The position numbers were made by a program, and so were the translations under genes. Positions 2,897 to 46,610 of a stretch of DNA of 64,000 bases are shown one piece after another (within the stretch, counting starts at the first letter, position 1; every line of letters begins with the position of its first letter). The notes beneath the pieces are model-generated. The model ran no database searches and was not told where the DNA came from. It was given only the letters and a program-made list of their open reading frames with translations. The stretch lies in the sequence record PP968062.1. One strand, 5' to 3'.

Positions 2897-4498
2897 ATGC
2901 AAGAGCTTGATATGGATAAAGAAGACAATTACCCAGCTGAGGGTAATTGGGAACAACAAGCTGGTGCAGCAGAACAGGGACCTACGGGTCCCACTCTGCC
3001 AGATGCCCCTGCTTCGGAAGAAGTAGCCTCTACTCCTCCTCCGGAACTTCCTCCTCTGGATATCGATCAGAAGGAAGTAAGTTTTACTGAATCTCGTAAG
3101 TGCTTCAGTGAGGCAATTCCTGGTTCCGCCTCTCTGATGAGTTTCATCCTTGAAAATCCCATCACCTTCAACAAAGTTCTGGAACGCCACAGTGCTCTCC
3201 TGAACGGAATGCAACAAGGTGATCTTACCACTACTAATAGCGATCGCGATTGGCTGATCTCTCTGGTGTCTGGTATGAACCACACCAACCTTGACCCGAC
3301 TCCTATCGGCGGCACTGAACGTCAAGGTTCTCACTGGCAACAAGGTATCTCGGCTCACGATGGTGACAATCTGATTCGTCCGGGTCGTCCTTCTCAGAAG
3401 ATCGATCGTAATAAACGTCACAGCAAAGAAGAGCTCCTGGCTTACCTAGCTAAGAAGTCTGGTCTGGGTGCTACCTACGAAGCATTTATGCCTCGTTCTG
3501 GTATCTGGCTGCGCCTGCGTGCTCCGACTCTCTCTGAAGTCGTAGCTCTGCAAACCGAGATGCAACAAGTTAAACTGCGTCTGGGTATGCAAACCAAAGG
3601 CATGTCGTTCTCGAACGCTGGTTCCGTAATGATGGACGCAATGACTAACCTGGCTCTGTCCTGTGTTATTGCTTCTAACAAGTCTTACGTAACTCCGTCT
3701 GACCTGGAACACGAACTGTCGATCTTCGACGAAGCACTGTTGCACCACGCACTAGCTTCTACCATGTACATCGATGGTTTCAACTACGACGTACCGTGTA
3801 TCGCTGATCCGGATAACTGTACCGCTCGCATCACTGCTAAGCTGAACATGTCTTCGATCGTTTGGTTCGATAACACTGTATTCAGTACTGAACAACGTAA
3901 GTTCATCGCTAAGAAATTTGCACCTGCTACTGATGAAGACTTCAAAGCTTATCGTGAAGGCTTTGGTATCGGTGGTAAGCGAGTGTTCTGGTTCGGTGAC
4001 ATCGGTGTTCGTCTGGCTATCCCGACCATCGCTCAACGTAAGATGGCTGCTTCCCAGTGGTCTCAGACTCTGATCGAAATGTCTCAAGGTACTTTCAACG
4101 AGCCACCTCATGGCATACAGCGTTCTGCTTACATTGATAAGCTGAGCAAAGCTACCATCGCTATGCAATACGCTCACTGGGTCGATGCTATCTACGAGAA
4201 AGACGATGAAGTAGAAGACTTTGACGACCAACTGATTTCCGATGATGAAGAGATCATTAGTGACTATCTGGCGAATACCTTGAGTGACCCTCAGTACTCC
4301 GATGACTTCTTTGAATCGGTTCATGAATACACTAACTCCTGTGTACTCGCAATCGTTGCTCTGCCTTCGCATAACTGCAAGCAGTGCAAAGGTCCTCAAG
4401 GCCAGGCATTCAACGAACGATTCCCGCACCTTGTACCGCTCGATCTGATGGCAATATTTTTCACGTTGGCGGGCCAGAAAGCCAAGCACCTGGAGTAA
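2897..4498 (+). CDS. Conserved protein resembling T4 gp26/gp51-like baseplate-hub or tail-assembly proteins
   Basis: 533 aa, AAGGT RBS. Pattern YEAFMPRSGIWLRLRAPT...CV...FDEALL...YDVPC...C...KLNM and a C-terminal CKQC...IFF resemble that family (pattern recall). Confidence 0.5.
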   Translation: MQELDMDKEDNYPAEGNWEQQAGAAEQGPTGPTLPDAPASEEVASTPPPELPPLDIDQKEVSFTESRKCFSEAIPGSASLMSFILENPITFNKVLERHSALLNGMQQGDLTTTNSDRDWLISLVSGMNHTNLDPTPIGGTERQGSHWQQGISAHDGDNLIRPGRPSQKIDRNKRHSKEELLAYLAKKSGLGATYEAFMPRSGIWLRLRAPTLSEVVALQTEMQQVKLRLGMQTKGMSFSNAGSVMMDAMTNLALSCVIASNKSYVTPSDLEHELSIFDEALLHHALASTMYIDGFNYDVPCIADPDNCTARITAKLNMSSIVWFDNTVFSTEQRKFIAKKFAPATDEDFKAYREGFGIGGKRVFWFGDIGVRLAIPTIAQRKMAASQWSQTLIEMSQGTFNEPPHGIQRSAYIDKLSKATIAMQYAHWVDAIYEKDDEVEDFDDQLISDDEEIISDYLANTLSDPQYSDDFFESVHEYTNSCVLAIVALPSHNCKQCKGPQGQAFNERFPHLVPLDLMAIFFTLAGQKAKHLE

Positions 4499-4563
4499 TC
4501 AACGAGGACCCCCGTCATAGTCGTCTGACAATTAACTTGGATGACTATAACGGGCACGTCACA

Positions 4564-4959
4564 ATGAACTCTTTCGGTCGTAGGACATCTAACGGTAAGA
4601 GTGCATTCGATGAACTCGTGCGGACGCTAGGAGCCGTAAGGCCAGTTATCGCTGAGATGATGACGCGCAAGGCTTATCATAAAGACTATGGTATTTTCGA
4701 TCACGATTCAGATGAAGCAGATCCTTTGGACTTGGTTCGCCTGCATCCTAAAGAAAACATCATTGAAGGTGGACCTGAGCGTACTTGGATTCGTAAATTC
4801 GTTAACTACAAGATCAATGAGATCTACGGAGTGTCGTTATTAGACTTCTTCGAGATTCCATTTAACCATTGCCTGTTTATGGTTGAACTCGCTGAGTCAA
4901 AAGCTCTGCAAGGTAGTATTCAGGCTAGACAGCTTGAGAAAGATCTTGGACTGAAATAA
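4564..4959 (+). CDS. Hypothetical protein; possible -1 frameshift extension of the upstream gene (tail assembly chaperone GT-like)
   Basis: The frame is open from 4384 and is -1 relative to 2897..4498. The in-frame ATG at 4564 has no clear SD. C-terminal motif INEIYGVSLLDFFEIP. Confidence 0.6.
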   Translation: MNSFGRRTSNGKSAFDELVRTLGAVRPVIAEMMTRKAYHKDYGIFDHDSDEADPLDLVRLHPKENIIEGGPERTWIRKFVNYKINEIYGVSLLDFFEIPFNHCLFMVELAESKALQGSIQARQLEKDLGLK

Positions 4960-23074: not shown

Positions 23075-24541
23075 TTAAGCTGCTTTCGCCAACCATTCCT
23101 CCAAAGACGGAAGATAGTCTTCGTGAGCATAGTTGATGATCGTTTCTACAACCGGACCTTGGAGTTCCAGGTTACCAGAGATCTCGTGTGGATCATCCGG
23201 ACTCAGTACCCAAGTATGCGGTGCGATTCGTTCAGTTGCATCAGCCAGATAGTTATCGGGCATCAGCGTCAAGTTCAGCTGGTCACCATCGAAGTCGGCG
23301 TTAGGTGCTTTCAGGCACAGTACCGACATGCTGATGGAGTTATCTCGAATGTCATTCTTAATAACGGTGATGAAGAACTGCTGTGTCGAACCACGTTGCA
23401 GAGTCGGGTTACGGTGGAACACACACGGAAGACCTTTGTACTTCGATTCTGCAATGATCTCTTTAAACAGCTGATCCAGGACTTCGTTGTACTTCAGGAC
23501 GTTCTCGTAGATGAACGAGTTCGCTTGGCGAGTCGTCATACGGAACTTGCGTTTCAGTTTGTTGATCAGGTGATACTTCAACAACTGACAGCCGACGCCC
23601 CACGGAATGTGAAGTTCATCGTAATCATGCGGGTCACTAATGGAAGTAATTACCGCACGAGCAGTCAGGTTAAGACGACCACCCAATACGTGCCTACGAA
23701 CCAGACCAGGCTTTTGCGCGATCCGTTGTTTGTCGTAGTTCTCATGGAAGATAGCCAGAAGCTTCAGTGCACGAGCTACACGGTTTTGTACAGTGATTGG
23801 TTTCAGCGGGATTGCCGAACTGCCGATACTACTAATAGTCAGTACCGCATCGATTGCTGCGCCGATCGGCTTATCGATGTAAACACCCGAGGTCGTAGAC
23901 TCTACAACGAAACAGAGTTTAGTTGGGATCGGAATGTTCTTCGGGAACAGGTGTTCTTTGTTTTGGTTAACGAATGCAGCCATCTCACCTTTGTTGGTGT
24001 TGATGATACTGCTATCGAGCAAGAACTGGAAGATCGTATCGAAGTTCTGAACGAAGTTGTTCAATCCACGTGGGAACTGGCGAGCCAGCAACTTGTCGAG
24101 TTTCCGTTTGGTTTCTTTCGAACTGATCGTATCGTAATCAAACTGATACTGCGTGTTGGTCAGATACTCCAGGAAGTCGAACTCTTTCATCGACATGTAT
24201 CCTGAAAGCATAATCCACAACTCGGGACTCACCAGACGATCCACCCCTTCCGGTGCCCGAATCCACATCGAAGGAACGATGGGTCGGTTGCTCGTGCTTA
24301 CTACTGGTGTACCACAGTTATCACAGATTACCCCGAGCTTGTATGCTTCCGTGATATGTTCACAGTCACACGATGCCGAGTTCTCGATCGCATCTGCATC
24401 CTGATAATGGGAGAACAGATAACGTTGGAATTCCTCCTTTTGTTCAGCATTGCTGGTATTGAAGTCGTTTGCGAATACTACTTTACCTCTTTGGTTAGCG
24501 AGCATTTCGTCATGATTGACAACCTGAGCATATAGACCCAT
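23075..24541 (-). CDS. Non-virion RNA polymerase beta-prime N-terminal catalytic subunit (phiKZ gp55-like), uninterrupted
   Basis: 488 aa; catalytic NADFDGD, FHRNPTL, Zn-binding CDC...CDNC, RAVI. Confidence 0.95.
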   Translation of the reverse strand: MGLYAQVVNHDEMLANQRGKVVFANDFNTSNAEQKEEFQRYLFSHYQDADAIENSASCDCEHITEAYKLGVICDNCGTPVVSTSNRPIVPSMWIRAPEGVDRLVSPELWIMLSGYMSMKEFDFLEYLTNTQYQFDYDTISSKETKRKLDKLLARQFPRGLNNFVQNFDTIFQFLLDSSIINTNKGEMAAFVNQNKEHLFPKNIPIPTKLCFVVESTTSGVYIDKPIGAAIDAVLTISSIGSSAIPLKPITVQNRVARALKLLAIFHENYDKQRIAQKPGLVRRHVLGGRLNLTARAVITSISDPHDYDELHIPWGVGCQLLKYHLINKLKRKFRMTTRQANSFIYENVLKYNEVLDQLFKEIIAESKYKGLPCVFHRNPTLQRGSTQQFFITVIKNDIRDNSISMSVLCLKAPNADFDGDQLNLTLMPDNYLADATERIAPHTWVLSPDDPHEISGNLELQGPVVETIINYAHEDYLPSLEEWLAKAA

Positions 24542-24582
24542 ACCTACTTCCTATTGTGTTGCGACAAAAAAAGGAGATAGAA

Positions 24583-24603
24583 GCGGCTCCCGAAGGAGCC
24601 GCC
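24583..24603 (-). terminator. Intrinsic terminator ending the chimallin transcript or ncRNA
   Basis: Minus strand GCGGCTCC-TTCG-GGAGCCGC with an extended stem, followed by T7. Confidence 0.9.
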
Positions 24604-24930
24604 TTATCTACTATCGATGGACCACCAACGGAGCCTGGCACGATCCTAGCATCGTCTACAAAGCTTAACCTCCGCTCTTCTCTGTAGCACTTTGACACTA
24701 GAACCTTTTACCATCCATCGTTGTTTTGATCACACGTTGCCTTTTGAGCAACTCCTTTCGGTTAAGTGATCGATCACGCCCGTGTAGCGAGAGGTCGACC
24801 TAGACTTTACGTCCACTAGACGATTACTTCGCGGAACCTACTCCTAACCGTTATCACCGAAGTGAACCAGGGTCGCAGTATTTGAATCGGGATGCCAGCC
24901 TTCTGACACCCCTATCAACCGGGGGAGTTG
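24604..24930 (-). ncRNA. Candidate large structured non-coding RNA (or structured 3' UTR of chmA)
   Basis: About 330 nt with no credible gene; several nested helices, UUCG and GAAA tetraloops, G-U rich stems (see finding). Confidence 0.6.
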
Positions 24931-24934
24931 TTTC

Positions 24935-26800
24935 TTAGTACAGAGTACCAACCGAACCAGCCATGTTCAGCTGGTAGCCACCACCAACGCCCATGCCGTT
25001 GACAACCTGAGCGGTAGAACCGACAGCGAAGTCTTGAATCATGGTGTTGCCGGTGAAGCGCTGAGCACCGAATACCTGAGCAACGTTGTCCATTGCTACG
25101 GTCAGACCGGCAGCAGCGATCGCCTTATCCAGACCCTCGATGAATTTCGGGTTGAAGATACCGCGATGTGCACGGGTGGTGTAAGTTACAGCGCCCAGGA
25201 ACGCACGGTCGTAGTTCTTGGATTGCTTGTTGCGCAGTTCCGGATGAATGTTCGGGTTGCACTGAGTACCGTACCAGGACATCCACTCTTGCTGGTTGCC
25301 TTCTGCGGCGTTCAGAGCACCGAGAGCGTCGAGGTCACGACGGTCACGTTTCTCATCGCCATCCCAGTAGTAGCCCTTGTTGATTTCGGTACCAGTCGAT
25401 GCAATGATCGGCTGGGTGTTGAAATCGAAGAAGCGCTCGAAGCCGCCACCAACCAGGTTCTGTACAGCGCGAATGATCGCGGCAGTAGCTTTCTGTTGGT
25501 TCGGGCCACCCATGGCATCCAGGAAGATCACGTCCAGAGCCGCGTTGTCGCCCATGCGGTCCAGGTCGATCAGGAAGGACGGGTTCGGACGAACCATGCT
25601 CAGCATCAGATCAGCGAAGTTCTGATCGGTGAAGGTGTCGGACTTGGTATCGATCTTCTTGTTCAGGTTGGACAGCCAACCCAGAGCACCGATGTCACCG
25701 AGGTCCTTCACTTTACCTACCTGAGGCAGGAACTTACGAGCCCAAGCCTGACCAGCAGTTACGCGGAAGGCGTTCGACAGAGCGAAGAGATACAGTTCCA
25801 GAGTGTTTGCCTTGATCCAGTTCGCCTGACGAACGTCAGTGATCAGGATCGCCGGGGAGAACGGCGGCAGCGGTTGGGTCTGTTGACCGAACATCTGGGC
25901 TTGCGGAGTCGGAGTGTACTCCAGGGTTACCTGTACCGACACCTGGTTCAGCATGGTGTCTGCTTCGTAGAACTCGTTCTCTTGCTGACCTTGCTTCTTG
26001 GTGCGGTTCAGGCTAACGAGGATGTCCGACTTGATCGGGTTACCAACGCTGTCCATTACCGGACGACCGGAGAAGTCCATCTTGGCAGCCAGGGTTTCGT
26101 CTTGGCCACGCAGCATGGCGATCTGGAACGGAGTCTCGCCAGCTTTCTTCGCCAGAACGTCATCACACAGGTTGACGGAGCGAATCAGGATGTCTTTCAG
26201 CAGGACTTCATCTTTCAGATCGAATTCAGCCGGGATCGGCAGCGGACCGGCCGGGTGTACTTCAGCCTTCGGACGACCGGTGGTCTGACGAACGAAGTCG
26301 CAGATGCGGTTCCAGTACTGAACGGTGAAGACGTCTTGCACTTCAACGTCAACGTCGAAGCGATCGTGGCTCATGCCGTTTTGAATGGTCACTTGGCGAG
26401 GAGCCAGGGTGATTGCCGAGTTCGGCATGATCAGCGGACGAACAACGATGATGCCGTTGCCACCAGCTGCATGCTTGACGATCAGCAGAGCGGAGTAGCC
26501 AACGCGGTTAGCGTCGCGGTCGAAACGCAGGATCTGGAAATCGTTTTCCAGGTCTTGATGGTCGATGGCATCTTTGCCAACGCGGGTCATTACTTGCAGA
26601 GCTTCGCTCGCACGGGCGTCGCCGCCATCAGTACGACCGGAGCGTTTGAACATGTTCGGCAGGCCGGAGATACCGCCTTGCAGAGTTTGAGGAGCGGATT
26701 GTTGCATGCGAGGAGCTTCCTGTTGTGCGCGCGGAGCAGCTTGAGCCGGACCGTTGTTGGCTTGAGCTTGGGTGTTTTGAGCGTCGGTATCACGAATCAT
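24935..26800 (-). CDS. chmA: Chimallin, major phage nuclear shell protein (phiKZ gp54 / 201phi2-1 gp105-like)
   Basis: 621 aa; MIRDT start, GGDARASEAL, ILRFDRD, QQENEFYE, FALSNAFR, GGGFERFFD, GDEKRDRRDLD, LNAAEGN match 201phi2-1 chimallin as recalled; adjacent to the gp55-like gene. Confidence 0.95.
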   Translation of the reverse strand: MIRDTDAQNTQAQANNGPAQAAPRAQQEAPRMQQSAPQTLQGGISGLPNMFKRSGRTDGGDARASEALQVMTRVGKDAIDHQDLENDFQILRFDRDANRVGYSALLIVKHAAGGNGIIVVRPLIMPNSAITLAPRQVTIQNGMSHDRFDVDVEVQDVFTVQYWNRICDFVRQTTGRPKAEVHPAGPLPIPAEFDLKDEVLLKDILIRSVNLCDDVLAKKAGETPFQIAMLRGQDETLAAKMDFSGRPVMDSVGNPIKSDILVSLNRTKKQGQQENEFYEADTMLNQVSVQVTLEYTPTPQAQMFGQQTQPLPPFSPAILITDVRQANWIKANTLELYLFALSNAFRVTAGQAWARKFLPQVGKVKDLGDIGALGWLSNLNKKIDTKSDTFTDQNFADLMLSMVRPNPSFLIDLDRMGDNAALDVIFLDAMGGPNQQKATAAIIRAVQNLVGGGFERFFDFNTQPIIASTGTEINKGYYWDGDEKRDRRDLDALGALNAAEGNQQEWMSWYGTQCNPNIHPELRNKQSKNYDRAFLGAVTYTTRAHRGIFNPKFIEGLDKAIAAAGLTVAMDNVAQVFGAQRFTGNTMIQDFAVGSTAQVVNGMGVGGGYQLNMAGSVGTLY

Positions 26801-30318: not shown

Positions 30319-31488
30319 TTAAGCCTGTTCACCTTCCGGTACAGAGACTTCTTCAACCGGCTTCAGGGGTTGACCATCAGCACGTTCTTGGAACTTGTCC
30401 AGAAGACGCTTTTGGTAATCCGGGATAGCCTGACCAGATACAGTCTCAACGAAAGAGCTCAGAGTGTGGTTCTTGAGGATCTCGCGTTTAATACCGTCTT
30501 GGGTCTGAGTTTGAATCTGACCCAGCTTAGCCAAGATAGAACCACCCATCAGAGCTTTCACCATACCAGACTTACAGTTGGTGATATGCTTAGAACGCTT
30601 GGCACCTTTCTTTTTCTTACGGCGGGTACGCATGCGGGATTCGATCGAATCGATTTCGGTCGGCTCAGCTTCAACAGTTTCCATTTTGCTCAGGTGTTGT
30701 TCCAGAAGGTCAGTAGACATTGCAGATTCAGTATCAGTAGATTCCAACATGATGTTGTTATGTCCTAGTTCACGAAGTTTATTGTACATGTAGAGACGGC
30801 TATTCGTTTTGGGAATGTCGTCCAATACAGGAGAGGAAATGATTTGGAGTTCGCCCGGTTTGAAGCCCTTGGTGAAAACGTCGTTAATACTCAACCATTC
30901 AGGAGGAGTAACGATACCATCGAACTTTGGCATTTCATTACATTCGGTATCGTAGGTGGGTATCTTTTTCATAAGTACCTCATGTCGTGTACCAGGTAGT
31001 TCACCGTTTTTGCTGATCAGGTTATTGTACTGGGTCCATAGTCTTTGGCTTTGCGAAGTTGTCGATCTTGTACCATGCAATACCCAGCTACGACGAACCA
31101 GGGTCATACCAGCCCAAAGAGTTTCTAGTTGATCCTTAGAGAGTTCTTCATGTTCTTTCATGAAGTTAGCGATAAGATCATCTAATTCTTGGAGTTCATC
31201 CGGTAGATATCCTGCAAGTGTATAACCTGAGTAAGAATCTGTAATCAGTTTGCCTTCCGGAGCGAATGCCTGACGTAGAGCAACATCAAAATGGCAGTAC
31301 ATGTTGTAATCCAACAGTAATGCTTGTTCCATATAGGGGTAGTCTAAGCCAAGTGTACAGATCTTTGCGAAACGGCTAGCTCCAGGTTGAGCAATCTCAC
31401 CACATAGATTACCATCCAGTACATTGTAAGTACCGAAAGGAAAAGATACAACTTCTTTATTTTGCGTTGGATTGGAATTATACATCAT
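30319..31488 (-). CDS. Hypothetical protein with a degenerate DnaB-like segment
   Basis: 389 aa; GFKPGELQIISS...KT without an intact Walker A; K/R-rich patch. Confidence 0.7.
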   Translation of the reverse strand: MMYNSNPTQNKEVVSFPFGTYNVLDGNLCGEIAQPGASRFAKICTLGLDYPYMEQALLLDYNMYCHFDVALRQAFAPEGKLITDSYSGYTLAGYLPDELQELDDLIANFMKEHEELSKDQLETLWAGMTLVRRSWVLHGTRSTTSQSQRLWTQYNNLISKNGELPGTRHEVLMKKIPTYDTECNEMPKFDGIVTPPEWLSINDVFTKGFKPGELQIISSPVLDDIPKTNSRLYMYNKLRELGHNNIMLESTDTESAMSTDLLEQHLSKMETVEAEPTEIDSIESRMRTRRKKKKGAKRSKHITNCKSGMVKALMGGSILAKLGQIQTQTQDGIKREILKNHTLSSFVETVSGQAIPDYQKRLLDKFQERADGQPLKPVEEVSVPEGEQA

Positions 31489-46339: not shown

Positions 46340-46610
46340 GGGTGGATGGGGCTTTGTAGCCCCACGACACCCTCTTCCAAGTTTTGCGACATAGTCGTTT
46401 TTTGTTTCCCTACCCCTGACTAAAGAATAAGGAAATTATATATGGGACCCCCCCAAAGGGTCCCCCCCACATATAATTACTATTTATATAAAAATTCTTT
46501 TAGAAGAAAAAGCTTTGAATAATGAAAATACTCTTTATTAAAGAATTCTATTCTTCTACTACAAATTACTTATGCGCGGCCCGGCCCCGCGAAAAAGAAA
46601 AAAAGAAAGC
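46340..46610. other. Non-coding AT-rich island with G/C-run hairpins (origin-like)
   Basis: No ORF; very AT-rich core flanked by GGGGCT/AGCCCC, GGGACCC/GGGTCCC and CGCGG/CCGCG inverted repeats. Confidence 0.45.

Follow-up and report, generated by a model that had tools for sequence, protein, structure and literature searches.

Between chmA, the gene for the nuclear shell protein chimallin, and the gene for the N-terminal beta' subunit of the non-virion RNA polymerase (nvRNAP), Pseudomonas phage HPP-Temi (Temi; Pawinskivirus, PA1C/PS119XW group) encodes a genuine, selected and compactly folded RNA of about 370 nucleotides (nt) that consists of three independent modules and an intrinsic terminator. 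The window analysed was a stretch of 64,000 nt from sequence record PP968062.1, and the region of interest was 100% identical to HPP-Temi. Within it, the spacer between the two genes spans positions 24542-24934 (393 nt). The RNA itself occupies 24566..24934 on the minus strand (369 nt); its first base directly follows the chmA stop codon, and it ends with the U-tract of the chmA unit's own intrinsic terminator. The spacer makes up the chimallin mRNA's 3' untranslated region (UTR). This was one of the options raised in an earlier note made from the sequence of the window alone. Helices of the RNA were kept by compensatory substitutions on the chmA-sense strand, the RNA is non-coding, and its unpaired junction and loop nucleotides were far more conserved than its stems. 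It falls outside every known RNA family and represents a modular variation on the theme of phage UTR-derived non-coding RNAs (ncRNAs).

Folding, coding capacity and domains 1 and 2

Thermodynamic stability of the spacer RNA was strand-specific. Folding of the minus strand yielded a minimum free energy of -139.3 kcal/mol (z = -3.93), which none of 100 dinucleotide shuffles equalled, as compared with z = -1.06 for the plus strand. The 14 G-U pairs and the compensatory changes were specific to the same strand. These results agreed with the minus-strand structured RNA proposed in the earlier note, both in its comparison with shuffled controls and in the covariation among relatives described below.

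Two small open reading frames (ORFs) are annotated over the spacer in HPP-Temi, CDS0382 (24844-24951) and CDS0381 (24510-24698), and the same pair is annotated in HHBS36_1. In PhiPA3 and in sequences of the phiKZ group, both were interrupted by stop codons, and several of these sequences also had frame shifts caused by differences in length. Neither ORF was thus kept open in relatives, in line with the earlier description of about 360 nt without a credible gene, and the small 'hypothetical protein' coding sequences laid over the structured RNA are probably spurious. The same holds for gp057 of Psa21 (locus L015, 4362-4604), which is annotated on the opposite strand. A start-stop mini-ORF following a GGAGG loop was also considered and rejected, as it was not conserved in the D6-clade genome L037. 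The annotated ORFs are what speaks for the region acting through small proteins, or as a DNA-level signal such as an origin, promoter array or packaging site, rather than as an RNA. Their disruption in relatives, the confinement of G-U pairs, compensatory changes and folding z-score to one strand, and the absence of a sigma-70-like promoter from the spacer region make such an explanation exceedingly improbable.

Searches against known RNA families were negative. With Rfam 15 (4227 models) at gathering thresholds, no match was obtained in the whole 64-kb window; in E-value mode (E <= 10), the spacer gave only partial, terminator-like matches with E-values of 0.75 to 8. Among eleven related loci, the only Rfam match was the known group I intron of phiKZ (locus L002, 5669-5990; 75.6 bits), which served as a positive control for the absence of an RF00028 match in the spacer at E <= 10. 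ARAGORN found no tRNA or tmRNA in 24300-25200. The failure of the earlier note to recognise a tRNA, tmRNA, RNase P, intron or known ribozyme was thereby borne out. The phiKZ intron lies 3' of the gp56 HNH endonuclease gene and splits the phiKZ beta' gene, unlike the beta' gene of the window (23075-24541, 488 aa), which has no interruption. Introns of this group in phiKZ-like phages are likewise structured, of similar size and located in the same neighbourhood, the phiKZ intron lying just downstream, after gp56; in contrast to them, the spacer RNA is intergenic, includes no endonuclease gene and does not match RF00028.

Ribozymes typically have multi-junction folds around an invariant unpaired core, and small ribozymes are plentiful in phage genomes, both of which would be consistent with a new self-cleaving or self-processing ribozyme that frees the 3'UTR RNA from the chmA mRNA. 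However, no Rfam ribozyme or intron model matched at E <= 10, while the same library detected the phiKZ intron, and no conserved candidate cleavage site was identified, so that this explanation is regarded as very unlikely. A role as a CsrA/RsmA sponge was rejected: the number of GGA motifs, counted by eye, was close to the expectation from base composition, according to a rough hand estimate. In its multi-junction architecture and invariant unpaired nucleotides the RNA resembles the large bacterial and phage ncRNAs GOLLD, ROOL, HEARO, OLE and raiA (Rfam), which have complex folds, are frequently associated with phages and had no known function at their discovery. It differs from them in matching none of their covariance models, in its smaller size, in its location inside an mRNA 3'UTR and in the separability of its modules.

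Three domains were curated as the basis of covariance models, with model R1 applying to domain 3 (D3) and model R2, together with alignment A7, to domain 1 (D1). RNAalifold analysis of eight distinct sequences from the Temi and phiKZ groups gave 118 pairs, eight of which showed changes on both sides. On the minus strand, D1 (24779..24923) forms a four-way junction closed by helix P1 (24920-23 with 24779-82). Its three arms are a long P2 hairpin (24882-24918), a P3 arm (24839-24880) ending in UCAC-UUCG-GUGA, with the UUCG loop at 24858-61, and a P4 arm (24787-24832) ending in GGAC-GUAAA-GUCU. Compensatory changes occurred in P1, P2, P2a, P3 and the base of P4. PhiPA3 retained this architecture, with approximately 120 nt inserted in P4.

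The domain 1 drawn in the earlier note was real and its UUCG and GUAAA hairpins were placed correctly, but it lacked the closing P1 helix and the P2 arm, and its two long-range helices were not supported. Instead of forming a CGACC/GGUCG helix, CGACC pairs locally with GGUU(A)G in P3. In PhiPA3, CGACC...GGUUAG is replaced by UAGGC...GCCUA, and the UUCG hairpin by CUC-GAAA-GAG; because of this helix replacement, the local P3 helix is favoured over the long-range pairings. Similarly, in place of the suggested ACGGUUA/UAAUCGU helix, UCG(A/U)CU pairs with AGGUCGA, and position 24820 is an A in seven of the eight variants, which agrees with the consensus helix and not with the one drawn earlier.

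Domain 2 (D2; 24728..24771, minus strand) is a three-way junction that is closed by GAUCAC/GUGAUC (24766-71 with 24728-33) and whose two hairpins are CC-GAAA-GG and GUURC...GYAAC. Here the earlier drawing was exact, and compensatory changes were found in the helices concerned (three pairs in the closing helix and two in a hairpin). When PhiPA3 was aligned by model, 99.1% of the cells of D1 and D2 together were paired, and 13 of the 61 pairs had changed on both sides. Shuffled controls showed 4.6 +/- 1.4 such pairs (0/500 reached 13) and controls with slid partners at most 2. No further occurrence of D1 or D2 was found in 28 related loci or in IMG/VR.

Domain 3 and the terminator

D3 (24615..24720, minus strand, 106 nt) is the most constrained module. 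It consists of helix P1 (24713-20 with 24615-22), a G-U-rich stem (24694-704 with 24643-53), an 8-bp stem (24680-87 with 24656-63) with a purine-rich P3 apical loop of 16 nt (24664-79), and a P4 hairpin (24625-38). P1, both stems and the 16-nt loop had been drawn exactly so in the earlier note, and compensatory changes were observed in this domain as well. Its helices are numbered P1 to P4. Three parts are invariant: J1/2 (UGGUAAA), the loop at the apex of P3 (AAGAGCGGAGGUUAAG) and the hairpin of P4 (CCAGGCUCCGUUGGUGG). In eleven distinct sequences from three lineages, 99.0% of cells were paired and 19 of the 37 pairs had changed on both sides; shuffled controls gave 10.7 +/- 1.8 such pairs (0/500 reached 19) and slid partners at most 4. 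This alignment was fitted to the model, which introduces some bias toward the structure; a MAFFT alignment gave 12 both-side pairs, with 97.3% of cells paired. Between Temi and L037, differences occurred at 36 of the 64 paired bases and at only 4 of the 42 unpaired bases, and 21 of the 22 changed pairs still paired.

Searches with nhmmer and model R1 identified D3 in two IMG/VR genomes (L037 and L029) and in metagenome contig L054, in each case with chmA on one side and the terminator on the other. All three are members of the D6/Psa21 clade, with ChmA proteins 83-86% identical to that of D6 and only 45% identical to that of Temi. A metagenome (JGI) scan for the D3 motif returned 38 pattern matches, of which one (L054) was a genuine D3, and IMG/VR motif scans for D3 and D1 yielded nothing beyond contigs already found. 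A cellular origin or mimicry of D3 was rejected, as the covariance model upheld none of 26 motif matches in 185,579 species genomes, and no match was obtained in E. coli genomes.

Within D3, CGGAG in the P3 apical loop (24670..24674) and CUCCG in the P4 loop (24629..24633), both on the minus strand, are candidate kissing partners. Their 5-bp complementarity is perfect and invariant in 11/11 D3 sequences. A loop-loop kiss is therefore probable, but since neither sequence varies, the pairing stays an inference from complementarity.

The intrinsic terminator (24566..24608, minus strand) consists of an extended hairpin, GAUAAGGCGGCUCC-UUCG-GGAGCCGCUUCUAUC, at 24608..24576, followed by U7 at 24572..24566. 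It was verified by sequence reading and by pair probabilities, which were approximately 1.0 throughout the stem, and matches the strong UUCG terminator with T7 described in the earlier note. A simple terminator scanner missed it, with 3 nt between the extended stem and the U-run. PhiPA3 has a terminator of the same type and D6, Psa21, L029 and L037 a sister type; P1 of D3 lies 6-10 nt before the terminator in all lineages.

The terminator separates two genes on the minus strand. Upstream in the transcript, chmA (24935..26800) encodes 621 aa, according to the ORF list, the GenBank record PP968062.1 and tblastn comparison with relatives. Downstream, the nvRNAP beta' N-terminal subunit gene (23075..24541), identified from the ORF list and GenBank annotation, encodes 488 aa. 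The ATG of this gene lies 24 nt past the terminator U-tract. Because a promoter cannot fit into this interval, its expression would require read-through, and the terminator is inferred to be leaky. In phiKZ, PHIKZ054 (gp54), the first gene of a six-gene operon, has a primary early and a secondary middle transcription start site (TSS) (Wicke et al., PMC8244752).

The D3 P4 loop GGCUCC (24630-24635) repeats the core sequence of the terminator 5' arm (24595-24600) in both terminator types, and the P3 loop sequence GGAG likewise matches the terminator 3' arm. These matches could reflect coincidence, an origin by duplication or a kinetic switch. A cis-acting attenuator, either riboswitch-like or protein-dependent, would employ D3 as an aptamer to tune terminator read-through and thereby the ratio of chmA to nvRNAP beta'. 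Consistent with such a device, D3 is aptamer-like, with an invariant unpaired junction, two arms with kissable loops, and P1 close to the terminator, while the beta' gene past the terminator has no promoter of its own and the P4 loop shares GGCUCC with the terminator 5' arm. However, in equilibrium folding, to which these results refer, D3 and the terminator behaved as independent units in four lineages and mutually exclusive aptamer and terminator structures were not obtained. Blocking the terminator arm cost 14-21 kcal/mol without the emergence of an alternative pairing to D3, and the sole candidate competitor comprised just 6 bp. Moreover, relatives without D3 share terminator and gene order, and no ligand is known. 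Attenuation by D3 is consequently considered rather improbable.

In a works-like sense only, D3 resembles a purine-type riboswitch aptamer, with which it shares a helical junction whose bases are conserved, two arms whose loops are complementary, and a terminator that follows within a few nt downstream. It differs in its length of 106 nt, in the absence of sequence or model similarity, of a ligand and of a detectable antiterminator, and in its position after a gene instead of in a 5' leader.

Exchange and turnover of modules at the chmA locus

In blastn searches, the spacer showed 95% identity within the PA1C group and 85-87% identity to about 45 phiKZ-group genomes, and was matched in pieces in PhiPA3. 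When flanks were included, the match to the phiKZ group ended almost exactly at the spacer edges. In 100-nt sliding windows, Temi and phiKZ were 79-89% identical over the spacer, as compared with 42-69% over chmA and 45-81% over the aligned part of the beta' gene; as a rough overall figure, these essential flanking genes stood at about 45-70%. Over 85 kb of phiKZ (5-90 kb), coding matches to the window were 64-70% identical, and the spacer was by far the largest conserved non-coding block. The sole other non-coding block of at least 100 nt with at least 80% identity to phiKZ was located at 46423-46543 (121 nt; phiKZ 31131-31248, 3' of the Dip gene gp37); it is AT-rich, includes a palindromic hairpin of some length and probably combines a terminator with an early promoter.

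Temi ChmA was 50% identical to its phiKZ counterpart and 67% to that of PhiPA3, and the corresponding values for beta' were 67 and 85%. The flanking proteins are thus closer to those of PhiPA3, yet the RNA is common to Temi and phiKZ, so that the relationships of RNA and genes conflict. This conflict indicates horizontal exchange in addition to purifying selection. Intron co-conversion was rejected as the source of this island of identity, as the intervening beta' gene was only 57-70% identical.

The modules also proved separable. In phiHQ, which is otherwise 95% identical to Temi, D1 was replaced by approximately 320 nt of a different structured sequence (module X), while D2, D3 and the terminator were kept; its whole spacer folded with z = -6.2. 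PhiPA3 has D1 and D2 but not D3, and some phages of the P. syringae clade have D3 as their only domain. Module X, with the core AAUUGCAGGCG...AAAGGUCUGACG...UGACCUGCCAAAGUC...ACUUACGGUGAUGUAA...AAACCGUAU, is a second conserved structured RNA, for which no Rfam match was found. It was located in phiHQ (L004, ~1340-1500), Psa21 (L015, ~4430-4580) and the unrelated Ralstonia phage RP13 (L116, 2430-2597), where the core lies directly upstream of a tRNA-Leu and abuts its 5' end.

Among close relatives in the D6/Psa21 clade, spacer content varied widely. The D6 spacer (87 nt) contains the terminator only, as does that of Noxifer. Three IMG/VR genomes of the D6 clade (L023, L024 and L025) have spacers of 165-205 nt with three unrelated hairpin-rich sets that neither model matches; L029 carries D3, L037 a hairpin plus D3, and Psa21 a spacer of 435 nt with module X and additional sequence. 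At the place of the D3 P1 helix of L029 and L037, D6 (L014, 4274-4300) has a small hairpin, GACCA-AUAG-UGGUU. The P1 helix AACCAGU...ACUGGUU occupies this site in L029 (4882-4900, 4990-5010) and L037. It looks as if the D3 core was inserted into, or deleted from, a hairpin loop.

These comparisons demonstrated that modules have been gained, lost and exchanged among jumbo phages at one locus, and that the RNA is dispensable in some relatives. What the earlier note envisaged as a single RNA is a mosaic whose modules can be exchanged. A role in shell nucleation, also suggested there, is unlikely to be universal, since the close relatives D6 and Noxifer share the gene order and have no RNA module.

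Intercistronic hairpins and REP elements protect upstream messages in bacterial operons, and the spacer RNA could in a similar manner serve only to keep 3'-to-5' exonucleases off the abundant chmA message and to uncouple the stability of this message from that of downstream cistrons. Its position would suit this function, as the gene that precedes it is very highly expressed and the one that follows is expressed at a low level, and all spacer variants in the clade are hairpin-rich whatever their sequence. Such a barrier requires only stable stems, however, whereas here stems drift and loops and junctions are near-invariant across clades. The terminator hairpin, moreover, already constitutes a 3' barrier, and D6 and Noxifer have the terminator alone. 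Generic 3'-end protection is therefore an unlikely explanation.

Candidate binding partners, possible function and significance

Experimental signs of expression and protein binding were found only for the homologous locus of PhiPA3. Enhanced crosslinking and immunoprecipitation (eCLIP) in this phage yielded ChmC-bound peaks in an unannotated RNA between chmA (gp53) and gp54 (Enustun et al. 2024, PMC11077065). The peaks are given as eCLIP coverage in one sentence, without boundaries, structure or conservation, and a second unannotated ChmC-bound peak lies in the gp203-gp204 intergenic region (Enustun et al., PMC11077065). As the gp53-gp54 locus holds D1 and D2 homologues, the PhiPA3 RNA bound by ChmC is very probably the same RNA, seen experimentally; it differs in the absence of D3 and in the 120-nt insertion in D1. 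The peaks lend indirect support to the idea, put forward in the earlier note, that the RNA is a ChmC ligand. The same note had called the RNA undescribed. This is correct for its structure and conservation, which are absent from the phiKZ and 201phi2-1 papers, but not for the PhiPA3 locus, in view of the sentence in Enustun et al.

In the reading favoured here, held with moderate confidence, the RNA is an abundant, protein-binding chmA 3'UTR RNA with ChmC as candidate partner and acts as an accessory enhancer; it is ranked first because of the eCLIP observation. The RNA would be made in large amounts together with chmA, from early and middle promoters such as those mapped in phiKZ, and would end at the terminator, whose leakage would also have to allow expression of the nvRNAP beta' gene. 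Through invariant loops and junctions, the RNA may offer a platform for protein binding, and it would act neither by coding nor by base-pair switching or catalysis of a known kind. ChmC, a nucleus-associated RNA-binding protein, is currently the best candidate partner. The RNA might tether ChmC to chmA transcripts, or might build up as a free, ChmC-bound RNA, and would in this way promote the shell mRNA's export, translation or stability. As an accessory enhancer, it would not be essential for nucleus formation.

Several observations weigh against this role for ChmC. According to the PhiPA3 study, ChmC binds phage RNAs with little sequence specificity (PMC11077065), and the eCLIP peaks may reflect merely an abundant, stable RNA. 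ChmC binding cannot explain D3, because PhiPA3 has no D3, and D6 and Noxifer combine the same gene order and terminator with zero modules. For HPP-Temi and phiKZ, no experiment showing a discrete RNA species was found. Supplementary tables of TSSs and transcription termination sites aside, papers on phiKZ (dRNA-seq, Grad-seq, ONT-cappable-seq) and 201phi2-1 report other UTR-derived RNAs and not this one. A recent review likewise contains nothing on a chmA 3'UTR RNA. Finally, a distribution that is patchy and shaped by horizontal exchange is at least as compatible with an accessory function directed at the host.

Such a function is the essence of a tentative alternative, in which the modules are accessory, trans-acting RNA cargo, independent ncRNAs carried in the strongest, earliest transcribed 3'UTR that act on host factors. 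The target of such a decoy or sponge would be an RNA-binding protein of the host, a nuclease or a defence system that senses RNA. This would explain the exchange of modules among phages that share a host. In agreement with it, modules are patchy (D6 has none, L029 carries D3, L037 has D3 together with a hairpin, and Psa21 has X) despite ChmA proteins that are 83-86% identical. The D1-D2-D3 array is 85-87% identical in two lineages of P. aeruginosa phages whose flanking proteins share 50-67%. Furthermore, the module X core lies beside tRNA-Leu in Ralstonia phage RP13 and therefore works outside the chmA context, and the invariant loops suggest a specific binding surface. On the other hand, no partner has been identified, and no similarity to host or cellular RNAs was found (motif scans gave chance matches only and E. 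coli genomes none). D3, in addition, is always located directly before the terminator, which would be needless for a free-standing cargo.

It is also possible, though doubtful at present, that the chmA 3'UTR serves nucleus-forming jumbo phages as a slot dedicated to the expression of exchanged, autonomous, tertiary-folded modules (D1, D2, D3, X and others), which would include at least one new class of functional RNA. D3 is the strongest candidate for a new class, because its stems have turned over but hardly any change is seen in its loops and junctions. This domain could form the aptamer or ribonucleoprotein core for a specific phage or host factor; roles of this kind could include the nucleation of ChmC export hubs on the shell mRNA or the neutralisation of a host RNA-directed defence.

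UTR-derived ncRNA candidates previously described for phiKZ and 201phi2-1 are 3'UTR_PHIKZ298, the 5'UTR of p40, the 5'UTR sRNAs of gp221 and gp302, and sRNA005 (PMC8545117, PMC10914365, PMC11512511). Like these, the spacer RNA is phage-encoded, derives from an untranslated mRNA end, has an intrinsic terminator and is kept among related jumbo phages. It originates from another locus, however, shares no sequence with them, and contains three junction domains in about 370 nt, in contrast to their one or two hairpins in 70-200 nt.

PhiKZ is the model nucleus-forming phage and chmA its most studied gene. Despite several transcriptome papers, a covariation-supported, three-domain RNA of 370 nt on the chmA message had remained undescribed. 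The analysis also corrects the annotation of several GenBank records, in which small 'hypothetical proteins' over this region are probably spurious. D3, being compact and well defined, lends itself to structure determination and to tests by antisense or deletion, which are already feasible in phiKZ. Structured RNA modules are shuffled by jumbo phages at one fixed place, in much the way that accessory protein genes are. If functional, the chmA 3'UTR RNA would bring an RNA into phage nucleus biology; its candidate roles are in ChmC binding, in the export or stability of mRNA, and in balancing shell protein against nvRNAP.

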